Below, piece by piece: positions 23,998 to 56,329 of a stretch of 64,000 bases of DNA. The stretch lies in the NCBI GenBank assembly GCA_964270895.1, contig OZ185438.1, one strand, 5' to 3'. The notes below the pieces were generated by a model. That model did no database searches. It was not told the DNA's origin and worked only from the letters and a program-made list of their open reading frames with translations. The stretch comes from Podarcis filfolensis (Eukaryota). Position 1 is the stretch's first letter; every line of letters begins with the position of its first letter. A program made the translations under genes and the position numbers.

Positions 23998-25456
23998 TCA
24001 GGCAAAAGTACTTGAGAAGGATGCCGAGCAGGTCTCATGGTTTAGCCTGGGGGCTAAACCAAAGATCTAGGAGGAACACATTCAGTCTCCTCATCTGAAG
24101 TTCTTCATCCCTGCCCCACATGAAGCAGAATCCTTTATGCAAAAGAAGCAAATAGTAACCAATTTGTATAATTTAAATATGTGGCATAATTCCTTCTGGA
24201 CCCCAAATTTGGTTCATATTGTTGCAGAATTTTTGATGGTTTTATTTTCCAGACTGAATACATGCAGTCTGCTTAGTCCACTGCATAATTCTGTGAATAT
24301 AGTTAATATAATAGTTCTCATTAAATTATGAAAGAAGAATAATGCAAATTAGTGCCAGACTATAAGAAATATTTGTTGAATATCATTAAGAAAAATGTTG
24401 AAGGATCGTCTGAGATGGAGATGCAGTTTCATGTCAGGATATAGTTTTCAATTTATTCTTACAATATACTGTTTAGGTTAGGTTCCTAGTACTTTTACCA
24501 TTATATATCTGCAATAAATGTATTGCAGCTAAATAATTTTATATAAAATTCACTTTTGATTGGATGCTTTTTTTCATTGTGTTGGAATGGAAACATCCAG
24601 TAATCAGCATTTGGGCATCTTGCTTATATGAATTGTTCAAAGGTATTTGGAGTTTAAGGGACAAGCTTCACTTGTTGTTGCTATGTCATTTGCTAAACAA
24701 TAACAAAATTGTTCTGTGTACAAGTACACAAGCACACATTCTAGTCACCACGGGGATCCCACAGAACGTGGTGTCCTTGTGATGAATGATCCTTGCCATG
24801 GCCATAATAATTGCTGTATTGATTTCTGCCATCACATTGAATTTCCATGCCTCTGCTTTCATTTTTCTGGCCATTGACTGTGGGTGTCTAGAAGTTATTT
24901 CATCTTCATTGTGGTAGACACACAAATGGGTTGGAGAAGGGAGGAACATTCACTGACTGGTCTGCTACACATTCAAAATTTCTCCCATTTTGGAGAACAA
25001 GTTAGATAAGCTATCTGTATTTATTTCAAATTCTCACATTGTTCTCAGTATATGAGCATTGCTTACCTATTGTGACTGAGAGGATTAGTTCTCAGAGGAT
25101 AAGGAAGTGAAATAGATGCCTTTTATATACTGCAGTCTATTATTCATTTAACATAATGGTTTAGGAGACAGCAGCAGCAGCATCTCATTCCCCTAGCCTG
25201 ATGTTGTTGGATAAAAGTAACAGCTAACAGTTAAGTTGCTCTGTACATATGATAGTACCAACTGTTTAAACCTTTTTGTTCATTTTCTAAAGCTAAGGAT
25301 TTGGTTGCATTAATTAGGAAAAGCCTTCCTAAATGTTTTGTGTCTATTCGCTGTGCACCAATTTTATCACTAAACCAGAAGTGTAGGACGCTTGCCCTTG
25401 AAAAATCAAGTATCTTCACCAGAGCTGGAATGTAATTAGACTAACATAGCAAATTT

Positions 25457-25682
25457 AAAACAAAAATTTTTTTTTCCTTCCAGTAGCACCTTAAAGACCA
25501 ACTAAGTTAGTTCTTGGTATGAGCTTTCGTGTGCATGCACACTTCTTCAGATACACACGAAATGAGCATGCACACGAAAGCTCATACCAAGAACTAACTT
25601 AGTTGGTCTTTAAGGTGCTACTGGAAGGAATTTTTTTTTTTTTGTTTTGACTATGGCAGACCAACATGGCTACCTATCTGTA
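25457..25682. mobile_element. Penelope-like element (PLE) terminal remnant: inverted terminal repeats plus a short unique tail
   Basis: 65-bp perfect inverted repeat (25474-25538 / 25566-25630) containing a minimal hammerhead motif, a known hallmark of PLE pseudo-LTRs. The PLE assignment, and treating ctatggcagaccaacatggctacc as its tail, rest on my recollection of squamate PLEs. Confidence 0.7.
25517..25554 (-). ncRNA. Minimal type I hammerhead ribozyme motif
   Basis: The - strand reads GUAU-CUGAAGA-A-GUGUGCAUGCACAC-GAAA-GCUC-AUAC: helix I GUAU/AUAC, CUGANGA box, helix II hairpin, GAAA box, loop-less palindromic helix III (AGCU) and a CUC cleavage triplet. Confidence 0.72.
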
Positions 25683-26894
25683 ATAGCAAATTTAGTCACT
25701 CTGCCACTGGTGTGGAAGGATTGCTATACCTGGTAGATGGTAGGTGACAGATGGGAACTAGCAGAATACAAGCATCTTAGGATATATGTACTGAAGGGGT
25801 CAGAAGAACATCCAGTGCCAGAACTATTAACTGCTTCAGGTGATAATATAGGCCAGTTAAAAACATTAGTTCTGTCATATGTGCGTAATATGCCATCATG
25901 AAGGTAGTGCCATGACTTCTGTAACTGCATTTCCACACTTCAATGCTAATATATCCGACACACATCTTGATCTTGAATAATTGACATTTATGTTTGTAGT
26001 TACTGATGCTCATTGAAATTTTTGGAGCCATTTAGAATTGCACTGCTAAAGCATGAAGCATTTATAGTATACTTTGGTTTTATGATGCACTCAAGACCAG
26101 ATTGTGGGGTGTTTTTGCTTTTGTTGTCTTACGACCCGTCCATACTTGCACTTGTCCTGTGTGTAGAAAGCACAGGTCTGAGAGGTCTTCTAATCAGTGC
26201 ATAGGCACTGGTCTAGAGTTTTCCCCTTGCTCCCCTCCTTTCCCAGGAAAAAAGCTCTTTAGCTTTAAATCAGAACAAATGGCAATCCACAAAAAACCCA
26301 ATTGCTGTTTGCCCCAACTGAGCACTAAAGAGCAGTATTCCCCAGGGGAAAGCAGCGGAAGAAGAGGAAGTCTGGATAAGCCCTTAATTTTTGATCAGTC
26401 TGAAAGAACAATTTTTTTATAATTAATTTTATAATGGCACAACACATGAAGTATGGGGGAGAGGGATAGTAGCATGCTTGATTGTAGAAAATAATAAAGT
26501 ATGAAATATGTAGCTAAAATAATGCTAGTATTTTTTAAACTGTAGGGCAGTGTCCTTTAAAGTCCTTTAAATGCATAAGCTTCTTTTATGTTTTGATCTT
26601 CCAGTGTTCAACTGTAACTAGTTTCAAACAAATTATTAAAGGATCACATAAAAATTAAAAGAAGCGCCCAAACAAGCTTAGCAGCAGAGCAGCAGCAGCA
26701 GTGTACAGTATTCATTATTTAGGCTTAAATGGCACATAACCTACTTTATTGCATCCTGATAATACTGATTTTTAGATGGCATGGTTCAGTGATGTAAACT
26801 GTGACATTTTAAAAAAATTAATCTTCTAAAACTTTGTTGATTTTACTAATCTTATTAAAAAGGGAAGATTACACTGTGAATATTGTACCTCAAT

Positions 26895-27090
26895 NNNNNN
26901 NNNNNNNNNNNNNNNNNNNNNNNNNNNNNNNNNNNNNNNNNNNNNNNNNNNNNNNNNNNNNNNNNNNNNNNNNNNNNNNNNNNNNNNNNNNNNNNNNNNN
27001 NNNNNNNNNNNNNNNNNNNNNNNNNNNNNNNNNNNNNNNNNNNNNNNNNNNNNNNNNNNNNNNNNNNNNNNNNNNNNNNNNNNNNNNNNN
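26895..27090. other. Assembly gap (196 N)
   Basis: Run of N seen directly in the sequence. Confidence 0.99.
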
Positions 27091-27370
27091 ATCATACACC
27101 ATCATTTTAGCTATAGATTATCTCAATGCTGCTTTATTGTGCCTCATCTCAGCAGCATATGTGGATTTAGTCTTGTATGCTTTGACAATGGTTTTTGACA
27201 TGATCTTTGCACATTTATTCTCTAGAGTTCAGTTAACATTAAATCCCAAGCTTGCAAAATTTAGACAATCTTGTATTCCTCAGTTGCATATATCTGCTCT
27301 ATTTCACAAAACTTTAGATATGCTTTCCACCCTATATAATGTTTATAGGTTACTATGCAACATTAAACAG

Positions 27371-27609
27371 GAGAGCCAGTGTGGTGTAGTGGTTAAGAGC
27401 GGTGGACTTGTAATCTGGTGAACCAGGTTCGCTTCCCCGCTCCTCCGCATGCAGCTGCTGGATGACCTTGGGCTAGTCACACTTCTCTGAAGTCTCTCAG
27501 CCTCACTCACCTCACAGAGTGTTTGTTGTGGGGGAGGAAGGGAAAGGAGAATGTTAGCCGCTTGAGACTCCCTAGGGTAGTGATAAAGCGGGATATCAAA
27601 TCCAAATCC
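27371..27609 (+). mobile_element. tRNA-derived squamate SINE (Squam2-like)
   Basis: A-box-like GTGGTGTAGTGGTTAAGAGC head, B-box-like GGTTCGCTTCCC, L2-like tail ending ATATCAAATCC. Possible AAACAG TSD (27365-27370 / 27610-27615). Confidence 0.8.
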
Positions 27610-39249: not shown

Positions 39250-39747
<498 letters not shown>

Positions 39748-48098: not shown

Positions 48099-48242
48099 GC
48101 TGGGATAGCTCAGTTGGTAGAGCATGAGTCTTTTAATCTCAGGATCTTGGGTTCAAGCCCCACATTGGGCAAAAGATTCCTGCATTGCATGGTTTGGACT
48201 AGATGACCCTCATGGTCCCTTCCAAATGCTATGATTCTATGA
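48099..48242 (+). mobile_element. tRNA-Lys-derived SINE with CR1 tail (Squam3-like)
   Basis: Head GGATAGCTCAGTTGGTAGAGCATGAGTCTTTTAATCTCAGG...GGTTCAAGCCC resembles tRNA-Lys(UUU). Tail GGACTAGATGACCCT...CCCTTCC...ATGATTCTATG is a CR1 3' end. Confidence 0.85.
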
Positions 48243-53195: not shown

Positions 53196-53905
53196 CACAC
53201 ACACAGTGACACTGATCCAGCAAAGATCAGTTTCTAAGCATGGATTATTTCCTCTGGAAAAACAAGAAGCTGCTATCAGTGTAAACATCTGTTGAATGCT
53301 CTGATTAATTCTCCTGCCTGGTTCTGGTCTTAATCCAGATGAAGTGTTCGATATAGTTAGCCAGTTAAGAGCAATTTAAAAGAGCCCAAACTACCTTCAA
53401 CTATTTTGGAACTTAAATCAATTTCATTTTTATCAAAGTGAAAATATATTAAGACAAATCAGTCCATAGAGGGTACTGTGCCCCAGTTTCAATTTTCTCT
53501 GGCATTTCTTCTTCAAAAATTGCTTACAATTTTTCAGTGTTTCCTGAGTACACTGCATATATATATTTCAAGTACTGGATCACATAAGTGCTTATACACA
53601 CTAATTGTTCATGAAGTACAACTGGCCCATAAATATGTTGTTTTCCGCGATGGGGTTCAGTTAGCATTATTTACAGTGAACATCATAGTATTTATTATTT
53701 CCAAACGTTCAGTCACTCTGGAATGTCTTTTGGGGCTCTGATACACGCATTCATACACATGTAGCTAAACAATTATGTGGGGATAGAATGAACAGCATAA
53801 GCAGTGGCTGTGCTTGAGTGCTAGGAATGCTAGTGAAGACAGGTACACAGAATATTCCTGGCTCTTAAAAAGAACAATTTGTGTACATCAGAGCTCTGAA
53901 GAGTA

Positions 53906-54472
53906 CCGTATTTTTCGCCCTATAGGACGCAATTTCCCCCCTCCAAAAATGAAGGGGAAATGTGTGTGCGTCCTATGGGGCAAATGCAGGCTTTCGCTGA
54001 AGCCTGGAGAGCGAGAGGGGTCGGTGCGCACCGACCCCTCTCGCTCTCCAGGCTTCGCGCAGCTCTCCACAAGCCATGGGAGCCCACGCTGGGCTCCCAC
54101 GGCTTGCGGACAGTTGCCTGCATGCTGAAGCCTGAGTGCGCTGAGCTCAGCGCACCCAGACTTCGCGCAGCTCTCCGCAAAGCGCGGGAGCCCGACGCTG
54201 GGCTCCTGCGGCTTGTGGAGAGTTGCCTGCATGCTGAAGCCTGGGCGCGCTGAGCTCAGTGCGCCCAGGCTTCGAGCTTCACGCAGCTCTCCGCAAGCCG
54301 TGGGAGCCCGACGCCTGGCTCCCACGGCTTGCGGAGAGTTGCCTGTTCTGGGGGGCTGGGGTCGGGGGAAGCTCAGGCCTGGGGGAGGGGAATAATTCCC
54401 CCCATTTATTTCCCCCCCAAAAAACTAGGTGCGCCTTATGGGACGGTGCGTCCTATAGGTCGAAAAATACGG
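53906..54472. mobile_element. CCGTATTT-type MITE (related subfamily) carrying a GC-rich tandem hairpin array
   Basis: TA-CCGTATTTTTCGCCCTATAGGACGCA...TGCGTCCTATAGGTCGAAAAATACGG-TG. It has the same subterminal blocks (ggggaaatgtgtgtgcgtc; aaaactaggtgcg) as the 15.7-kb copy. Confidence 0.87.
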
Positions 54473-56329
54473 TGCATATTAAGGTGAGTGAATGAGTACA
54501 ATATGTTCTAGTGCAGCCGTATCAAACTGCCAACATAGTAGTTGCCAGAACATAGTTTCCAGTAATTAAGAAACTTGTGAAATGATCTAGAGGCACAATG
54601 AGTCTTTGTGACACATAGCTCATATACATTTTTCAAAGGGTACTTAAGTCATTCTTGCAAATTACCATGATTAAATGTCAACTTAACTTCAACCATCAAA
54701 GATTGTACTGTCTCTTAGATATAGAAATTAATTTAAGTTCATTTTAATTCCTTTCTAGAGACAAAATGCCTCCTTGTTTCCATCTTTTTTTAAGAAGTCC
54801 AACATGGGGAAAAAATTCAACTCTTCCTTTGATTTCAAAATAGTGATGGAAGATCTGAGTCTGGGCAGGGCTAAATGTGAGGCAGGACTCTGTCTCAAAC
54901 CTGTTTTCCATGTTGCTGCTTTGCTATGAACTAGCAATAAAAATAGTGCCTATCTAGCTGTGCCAGGAATCACATCTGGGATTAAAGCAATAATCAGGCT
55001 CTCCTGCCAAGATTATGCACCCATTATTTTCACTTGGAAACTATTGGCAGGACTGGCCTGACTGATTAAATAGACCTCTACTGACTCAAAATGTGGAAAT
55101 CATCATAACAGAAGCAACTGATTTTACAGACGGTTTAGTTCTTTTGTTCATACTGCATTATCAGTGGTCCAACACAGGCAACCATCTTAACCAAGTAGTC
55201 TTCTACCCTGATTTTTTTTTTTTTTAAAGACGTAGTATGGAGTTTCTGCCACACTTTCTAATGTGTGGTAAAATTGGGAGCCTTATGAAGTGGCAAATCT
55301 TTGCCCCACCTCCATTTACCCCTTGGTACTATTTGCCATTTGTTTTCACCTATGTAAACACTTTTGACTTTAGAAACATTTATTTAAAATAAATTATGGC
55401 TTCTGACAAGCTGTATCCATTATGCATTTATAAATTGGGGCAGGGGGCTGTGAGAATTCCTGAGCAACACCTGACACTTTCAACTTGCTAGTGTATATAT
55501 AGGAGTTAAGGTCTTCGTTTATGTCTTGGTGGTGGTGTTGGTGATGGTGTTTTCAAATTATTTTTATTAGTTTTCCAAATTACTTTAATTTAATACAATT
55601 TCTTCCTATATGCCTTTGTTAATGGGCAATAAAGTGAGAACCCTTTCACTCTGAAATTTGGCAAGTGTTATTCCTGGTGGTGGGGTAGTAAGTAGAATGC
55701 CTGGAAATTGCATTAAGAAGGACAGATTTTACAGGCAGAATAGCAGCTGGGTCATCTGTTGAAATCAATGGGAAGAAAAAAGAATGATGAAAATACACCC
55801 AGCTTTACCAAGCAGACAGTTCTGTTGGAAGAAATCTAGGGAATTGGAAGTCTGATTTAGCGTAAGGTTAGAAATTTTTTTACTTAAAAGAATTATTTTT
55901 CGTCTCTCTTCCTTCTTGATGCACACAAAGCTTCTCCTACCTCTTTGTTATACTATATGATACATGTGCTTCAAAATTGGAGAGTGAACTTTTTTCCTGC
56001 TGGTATGACAAATAAGGCTTTAAATGAATTGACGAAAACTTTGTAACAGGATTTGATCTTGAGAAATTGGAACAGCAAGAATTCTTCAGCATGATGACGT
56101 ATTTGTGAGCAATACCTAATATATTTGAATACCTTGAAATGTTTCATTTTAAGGACTTCCAGCATCCTTGTTCAAGGTTTTCTATTTGAAACAACATTGT
56201 ATATGTCAAAATAGTTTTACAAGAAAATTCCATCTAACAAGACAGCTGAATGAAACATAGGTCTTACTGCCTTATCTTGTCAAGAAGCTGTAAATATTCG
56301 AATAAAAGACCACATACAAAGTCATGTAA

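Follow-up and report, generated by a model that had tools for sequence, protein, structure and literature searches.

The minus strand of the 64-kb window (the whole stretch of Podarcis filfolensis DNA analysed here, 64 000 nucleotides long) carries at positions 25554–25517 a 38-nt minimal type I hammerhead motif, which can be read directly from the sequence. This motif was very probably inherited as the minimal hammerhead of a short retroelement of the Penelope-like element (PLE) type, which came to rest within a CNKSR2-type gene, in one of its introns, as a dead-on-arrival, inactive insertion. The insertion is non-coding, is around 225 bp long (25458–25682), and lies between 12-nt direct repeats.

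All parts of the motif are on the minus strand, and they follow one another in the order expected of a type I hammerhead. The 5' strand of helix I (GUAU, 25554–25551) is followed by the CUGAAGA box (C3 to A9, 25550–25544), by an unpaired extra A between A9 and position 10.1 (25543), and by helix II (25542–25529), a 14-nt palindrome that forms 5 bp with a CAUG loop and is closed by the pair G10.1–C11.1. Then come GAAA (G12, A13, A14 and A15.1, 25528–25525), GCUC (25524–25521), with U16.1 at 25522 and the cleavage nucleotide C17 at 25521, and finally the 3' strand of helix I (AUAC, 25520–25517). Helix I (GUAU/AUAC) comprises 4 bp and is open-ended, the next position being a U–C mismatch. Helix III has no loop and consists of the palindrome AGCU (A15.1–G15.2–C16.2–U16.1, 25525–25522). 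By standard hammerhead numbering, the predicted scissile bond lies between C17 (25521) and A1.1 (25520). The core of a PLE-type minimal hammerhead is present in full, namely CUGAAGA, GAAA, the U at 25522 and a C17 that is not G, and so are its other features: an open, short helix I, a closed helix II starting with a G–C pair, a base after A9, and no loop 3. The earlier sequence-only reading of this DNA, which had claimed a complete minimal hammerhead here, thus gave the letters exactly.

A structural descriptor of our own was applied to the two strands of the window. It demands CUGANGA, 0–1 extra nucleotide, a hairpin with no fewer than 4 bp, GAAA, palindromic positions 15.2 and 16.2, UH, and a helix I likewise no shorter than 4 bp. 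The only match is the 25554–25517 site, and 300 dinucleotide-preserving shuffles of the window yielded no match. The Rfam hammerhead families (Hammerhead_1, Hammerhead_3, Hammerhead_II, HH9 and HH10) gave no match at their gathering thresholds across the whole window, nor any match even at E ≤ 10 in slices of 301 and 56 nt. The Rfam hammerhead models presuppose a helix III hairpin, and the missing score is therefore what would be expected for a motif that lacks one. It is no argument against the motif, which lies outside the Rfam families as modelled. Of the checks proposed with the sequence-only reading, a descriptor or covariance search, the descriptor half came out in its favour, whereas the Rfam models did not recognize the site.

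Might the motif be a mere coincidence, with short boxes falling together in the AT-rich DNA of an intron? The window contains 40 CUGANGA boxes, and no Rfam hammerhead model matches. The likelihood of such an accident is vanishingly small, however: the shuffled windows contain no match at all, the G10.1–C11.1 pair and the extra base are present although the descriptor does not demand them, and the motif is contained in an insertion that has clear borders and bears a PLE signature. We therefore rejected a chance match, which is effectively refuted by the shuffles together with the alignment of the two arms and the target duplication described below.

The resemblance to known PLE hammerheads extends beyond the core. 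According to Cervera and De la Pena (2014; PMC4209133), minimal hammerheads of metazoan PLEs carry an extra base between positions 9 and 10.1 and a G10.1–C11.1 pair, with palindromic positions 15.2–16.2 and a short helix I; in truncated elements they occur as solitary motifs or as nearby pairs on opposite strands, and similar motifs are present in turtle and snakes. The motif described here is likewise of type I, with the core CUGANGA...GAAA...UH, the base after A9, the G10.1–C11.1 pair, a 4-bp helix I, palindromic 15.2/16.2 positions (AGCU) without a loop 3, and a partner on the opposite strand of a truncated element. A palindrome at 15.2/16.2 without loop 3 implies a dimer for the formation of helix III. 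A difference lies in helix II, a 14-nt palindrome with 5 bp here, in contrast to the 7–8 bp of the Schistosoma families.

The anatomy of the insertion could be resolved by aligning its two halves with each other. At its left border lies the target-site duplication copy ATAGCAAATTTA (25446–25457), which aligns at 12 of 12 positions with the right copy (25683–25694); because the final A is ambiguous, the length of the duplication is 11–12 nt. Direct words of at least 12 nt occur in equivalent flanks at only 0.2% of random placements in the window (p ~0.002). The duplicated target is AT-rich and includes ATT. The left (L) arm, 25458–25565, is an inverted, 5'-truncated copy with its element sense on the minus strand; the complete hammerhead is in this arm, preceded by 15 nt, and the arm terminates at GTTTT, without a tail. 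The right (R) arm, 25566–25682, is a direct copy on the plus strand, 5'-truncated inside the helix II loop, and it retains GAAA-GCUC-AUAC without any CUGANGA box. It passes through the same GTTTT as the L arm and then continues for another 34 nt, forming a 3' extension, or tail, that is found in this arm only (25649–25682, plus strand). The two arms, both 5'-truncated, meet head to head at 25565/25566. They are identical over 65 nt, and they end ~85 nt (L) and ~121 nt (R) past the start of helix II, the R distance being counted from where helix II would start. That the inverted partner, from 25566 onward, has no CUGAAGA box had been pointed out before; the arm alignment agrees and shows the cause to be 5' truncation inside helix II rather than mutation.

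One stretch of the two arms does not correspond. Their A/T linkers differ en bloc, reading A9T5 in the L arm (25458–25473, minus strand) versus A2T13 in the R arm (25631–25648, plus strand) when both are written in element sense. This difference is beyond a model in which both arms were copied from a single template, and it hints at two templates, at slippage of the reverse transcriptase (RT), or at later repair in the palindrome.

These features can be compared with what is known of PLE insertion. The published signature consists of an optional tail of 30–40 bp at one end only, an adjoining inverted, 5'-truncated copy, an AT-rich target and a target duplication (PMC8557442, PMC11167929), and high 5' truncation is also counted among the criteria (PMC8557442). 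A further comparison is with Anolis carolinensis, whose PLE protein, once purified, nicks the two strands of the target and extends each of them, favours AT-rich targets with ATT, and has two internal start sites for reverse transcription, by which the tail is delimited (PMC11167929). In Poseidon_Ac (PAc) these start sites are 111–118 nt into the ORF, which itself starts at helix II (PMC11167929). The insertion in the Podarcis window agrees with this signature throughout: it has an inverted and a direct copy, both 5'-truncated, a 34-nt tail at one end, and an AT-rich target with a 12-nt duplication. It also agrees with Poseidon_Ac in that two reverse-transcription start sites ~30–40 nt apart, at ~110–120 nt past the start of helix II, fit the arm ends seen here, and in that cutting and extension of both strands of an AT-rich target fit the structure of the insertion. 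The hammerhead of Poseidon_Ac has the same layout as well, with CUGAGGA, an extra base, a long helix II, GAAA, a palindromic CG, U and C at the pLTR/ORF junction (PMC11167929). The two differ in that, by eye, no primary-sequence similarity was seen beyond the core, Poseidon_Ac being the only PLE consensus compared, and in that the ORF of Poseidon_Ac starts at helix II, whereas the unit here is short and non-coding with a T-rich linker. The non-coding T-rich sequence that follows the motif, unlike in Poseidon_Ac, points to another PLE lineage or to a non-autonomous derivative.

The presence of both the hammerhead traits and the insertion signature supports the suggestion of the sequence-only reading that this is a lizard PLE hammerhead. 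Every PLE criterion that can be tested on the letters places the locus, as a probable member, among the minimal hammerheads carried by truncated, inverted PLE insertions.

In LINE-1 twin priming, both nicked target strands prime cDNA, and a head-to-head structure between target duplications results. The present insertion differs from this in that there is no poly(A) priming, and its arms start at two defined internal sites of the RNA. A tail delimited by two such sites is specific to PLEs (PMC11167929).

The 157-bp near-perfect palindrome flanked by a direct repeat might also suggest a MITE whose terminal inverted repeats happen to hold hammerhead-like boxes. We regard this as highly improbable. 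The insertion is asymmetric, with the 34-nt extension placed on one side only, between the palindrome and the duplication; the palindrome reaches the centre instead of being confined to two short termini around a core; and the motif bears four independent traits of PLE minimal hammerheads. A target duplication of 12 nt is likewise not typical of the cut-and-paste superfamilies. A MITE was accordingly rejected on the grounds of the asymmetric tail, the 12-nt duplication and a palindrome that extends as far as the centre.

Animals are known to harbour non-LTR retrozymes, short non-coding units that carry type I hammerheads. It has been argued that these derive from PLE pLTRs as non-autonomous elements, and they occur in reptiles but are absent from birds and mammals (PMC7229834, bioRxiv 10.64898/2026.07.22.740005). 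The unit described here is similar in being short, non-coding and equipped with a type I hammerhead. What defines a retrozyme, however, is a tandem of direct repeats from which circular RNAs arise, whereas here there is one complete motif with an inverted, truncated partner. When the region 25440–25720 was compared with the window by BLAST, neither a second copy of the element nor a direct repeat of the unit was found, and a retrozyme locus was rejected because the window contains no tandem direct repeat of the unit.

Degenerate patterns derived from two parts of the element found no match in collections of viral, metagenome and prokaryotic genome contigs, and a Pfam scan of the ten longest ORFs of the window revealed neither an RT nor a GIY-YIG domain. 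The longest ORF near the insertion (26834–27421, 195 amino acids) is an artefact, because it spans a run of 196 N (26895–27090) that represents a gap or masked sequence. Two other places in the window were noted in the course of these searches. At 53814–54495 there are several overlapping ORFs on both strands, consistent with a repeat. At 48099–48171 (plus strand) Rfam reports a tRNA match of 42.6 bits, above the gathering threshold, which is not called by ARAGORN and has several non-canonical pairs in the acceptor stem; a SINE with a tRNA-derived head is its probable source.

The origin of the insertion as a PLE copy can be pictured as a series of steps, inferred from the published mechanism, that would account for the observed anatomy. 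The PLE endonuclease would have nicked both strands of an AT-rich target ~12 nt apart, and each freed 3' end would then have primed reverse transcription on the element RNA. On the top strand, synthesis from the inner start site would have given the L arm without a tail, and on the bottom strand, synthesis from a start 34 nt further downstream would have given the R arm with its tail. Synthesis of both cDNAs presumably broke off early, and the two would have been joined within helix II, at its palindromic GCATGC. A twin-primed, head-to-head palindrome between target duplications would be the outcome, and the anatomy described above is explained by this scenario. At the level of the family, the literature suggests that the hammerhead would serve to process multimeric element RNA, acting weakly and in dimers held together by the AGCU helix III.

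The host gene could be recognized from a plus-strand exon at 39342–39553, within the ORF 39298–39747, that encodes part of a CNK2/3 domain (Pfam PF06663, CNK2_3_dom; E 1.4e-22) and has acceptor-like and donor-like borders. Judged by this domain, the host is a CNKSR2-type gene transcribed on the plus strand. The complete hammerhead is therefore antisense to the host transcript, as the sequence-only reading had it for the CNKSR2 pre-mRNA, and the element, at ~14 kb upstream of the exon, is intronic.

Because the arms are inverted copies of each other, RNA from either strand of the palindrome (25474–25630) would fold into a stem of 65 + 6 bp, with 65 contiguous pairs between 25474–25538 and 25630–25566 and 6 inner pairs. 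The predicted energy of the minus-strand hairpin is −131.5 kcal/mol, compared with −33 ± 4 kcal/mol in shuffled sequences; the 65-bp hairpin noted in the sequence-only reading is thus exact to the pair. What this stem does to the motif depends on how much of it is transcribed. Helices I and II can form in the isolated 38-mer, at −6.0 kcal/mol versus a minimum free energy (MFE) of −6.8 kcal/mol, and thermodynamic folding gives a helix I probability of 0.64–0.76 for an RNA that starts at 25554. With 8 more upstream nucleotides the probability collapses to about 1e-6 to 6e-4, because UUUCGUGUG, directly upstream of the motif (25555–25565, minus strand), pairs with CACACGAAA of helix II and the core at −14.2 kcal/mol. 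This alternative hairpin may be a feature of the family, acting as a built-in switch, or may be junction filler. In the whole palindrome the helix I probability is ~1e-29, which puts strong numbers on the earlier suggestion that the hairpin could mask the motif. Folding during transcription would be no help, since in a minus-strand RNA the complementary arm is transcribed first and the hairpin can close while the motif is still being made. Dimers fare little better in the predictions. The palindromic helix II favours an inactive intermolecular duplex, which at −30.6 kcal/mol for two 38-mers is preferred over the active dimer, and the AGCU/AGCU duplex that would constitute helix III in trans is worth only −2.5 kcal/mol.

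Experiments on related hammerheads bear on the same question. PLE minimal hammerheads did not cleave as monomers and cleaved poorly in vitro even as dimeric constructs (PMC4209133); a review (PMC6765202) describes the same behaviour and credits dimer cleavage to Lunse et al. 2016. The Anolis PLE hammerhead cut only when the protein of the element was added, and no public RNA-seq reads end at its cut site (PMC11167929). An active ribozyme at this locus might be pictured as follows: an antisense RNA of the CNKSR2-type intron would be cut after C25521, with a second RNA of the family or a PLE protein supplying helix III or acting as a chaperone, and antisense RNA or host expression could be affected as a result. 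The complete catalytic core and the ability of the isolated 38-mer to form helices I and II speak for such activity, and the protein-assisted Anolis hammerhead means that masking computed in silico is perhaps not final. Against this stand the near-zero helix I probability in the full palindrome, the early transcription of the complementary arm, the weakness of helix III in trans, the poor cleavage of dimeric constructs and the lack of a tandem partner in the window, so that we hold an active ribozyme at this locus to be very unlikely. The published PLE promoters, moreover, are located in the upstream pLTR region (PMC6765202), and with only 15 nt preserved upstream of the motif, the upstream pLTR is absent from this copy. 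Having no tandem partner and no upstream pLTR, and with any longer minus-strand RNA predicted to fold into the hairpin, the hammerhead of this copy is almost certainly an inactive passenger, as far as can be judged from modelled folding and from the published behaviour of PLE minimal hammerheads.

The hairpin itself is a separate matter. In the sense pre-mRNA of the host, the plus strand of 25474–25630 would form a stem of ~65 bp at −125.7 kcal/mol and so a long intronic double-stranded RNA. Long intronic double-stranded RNA is the type of substrate used by editing or dicing enzymes. It might accordingly be proposed that the hammerhead is irrelevant and that the host is affected by the hairpin, through A-to-I editing, small-RNA processing, or trouble for polymerase or replication. 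The position of the host gene on the plus strand, which would place this stem in its pre-mRNA, fits such a proposal, and Rfam does give matches to microRNA precursors across the hairpin slice (mir-559, mir-3688 and others). These are all below their gathering thresholds, however, the best reaching 60.8 versus 95 bits, and they involve several unrelated microRNA families on both strands, which indicates a generic hairpin; a microRNA precursor was rejected for these reasons. Any effect on the host would also be incidental rather than a selected function. We consider this explanation unlikely as an account of the locus. A broader form of the idea, in which the insertion is not inert because its hairpin is edited or diced in both sense and antisense RNA while the antisense hammerhead is unmasked by a PLE protein and cuts, seems to us distinctly unlikely. 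Were it true, a neuronal scaffold gene would be under regulatory influence from a recent retroelement copy.

The reading that we prefer, an inherited hammerhead in an inactive PLE-type insertion, adds an ordinary copy to a known class: PLE minimal hammerheads, the logic of their dimers, their weak activity and their occurrence in reptiles have been in the literature since 2014. The value of this copy is modest: it records cleanly, in a natural setting, how PLEs insert by the mechanism that was worked out in vitro in 2024, with arm starts 34 nt apart, a one-sided tail, a 12-nt duplication and an AT-rich target. Copies of this kind also put long, perfect hairpins into the introns of host genes.
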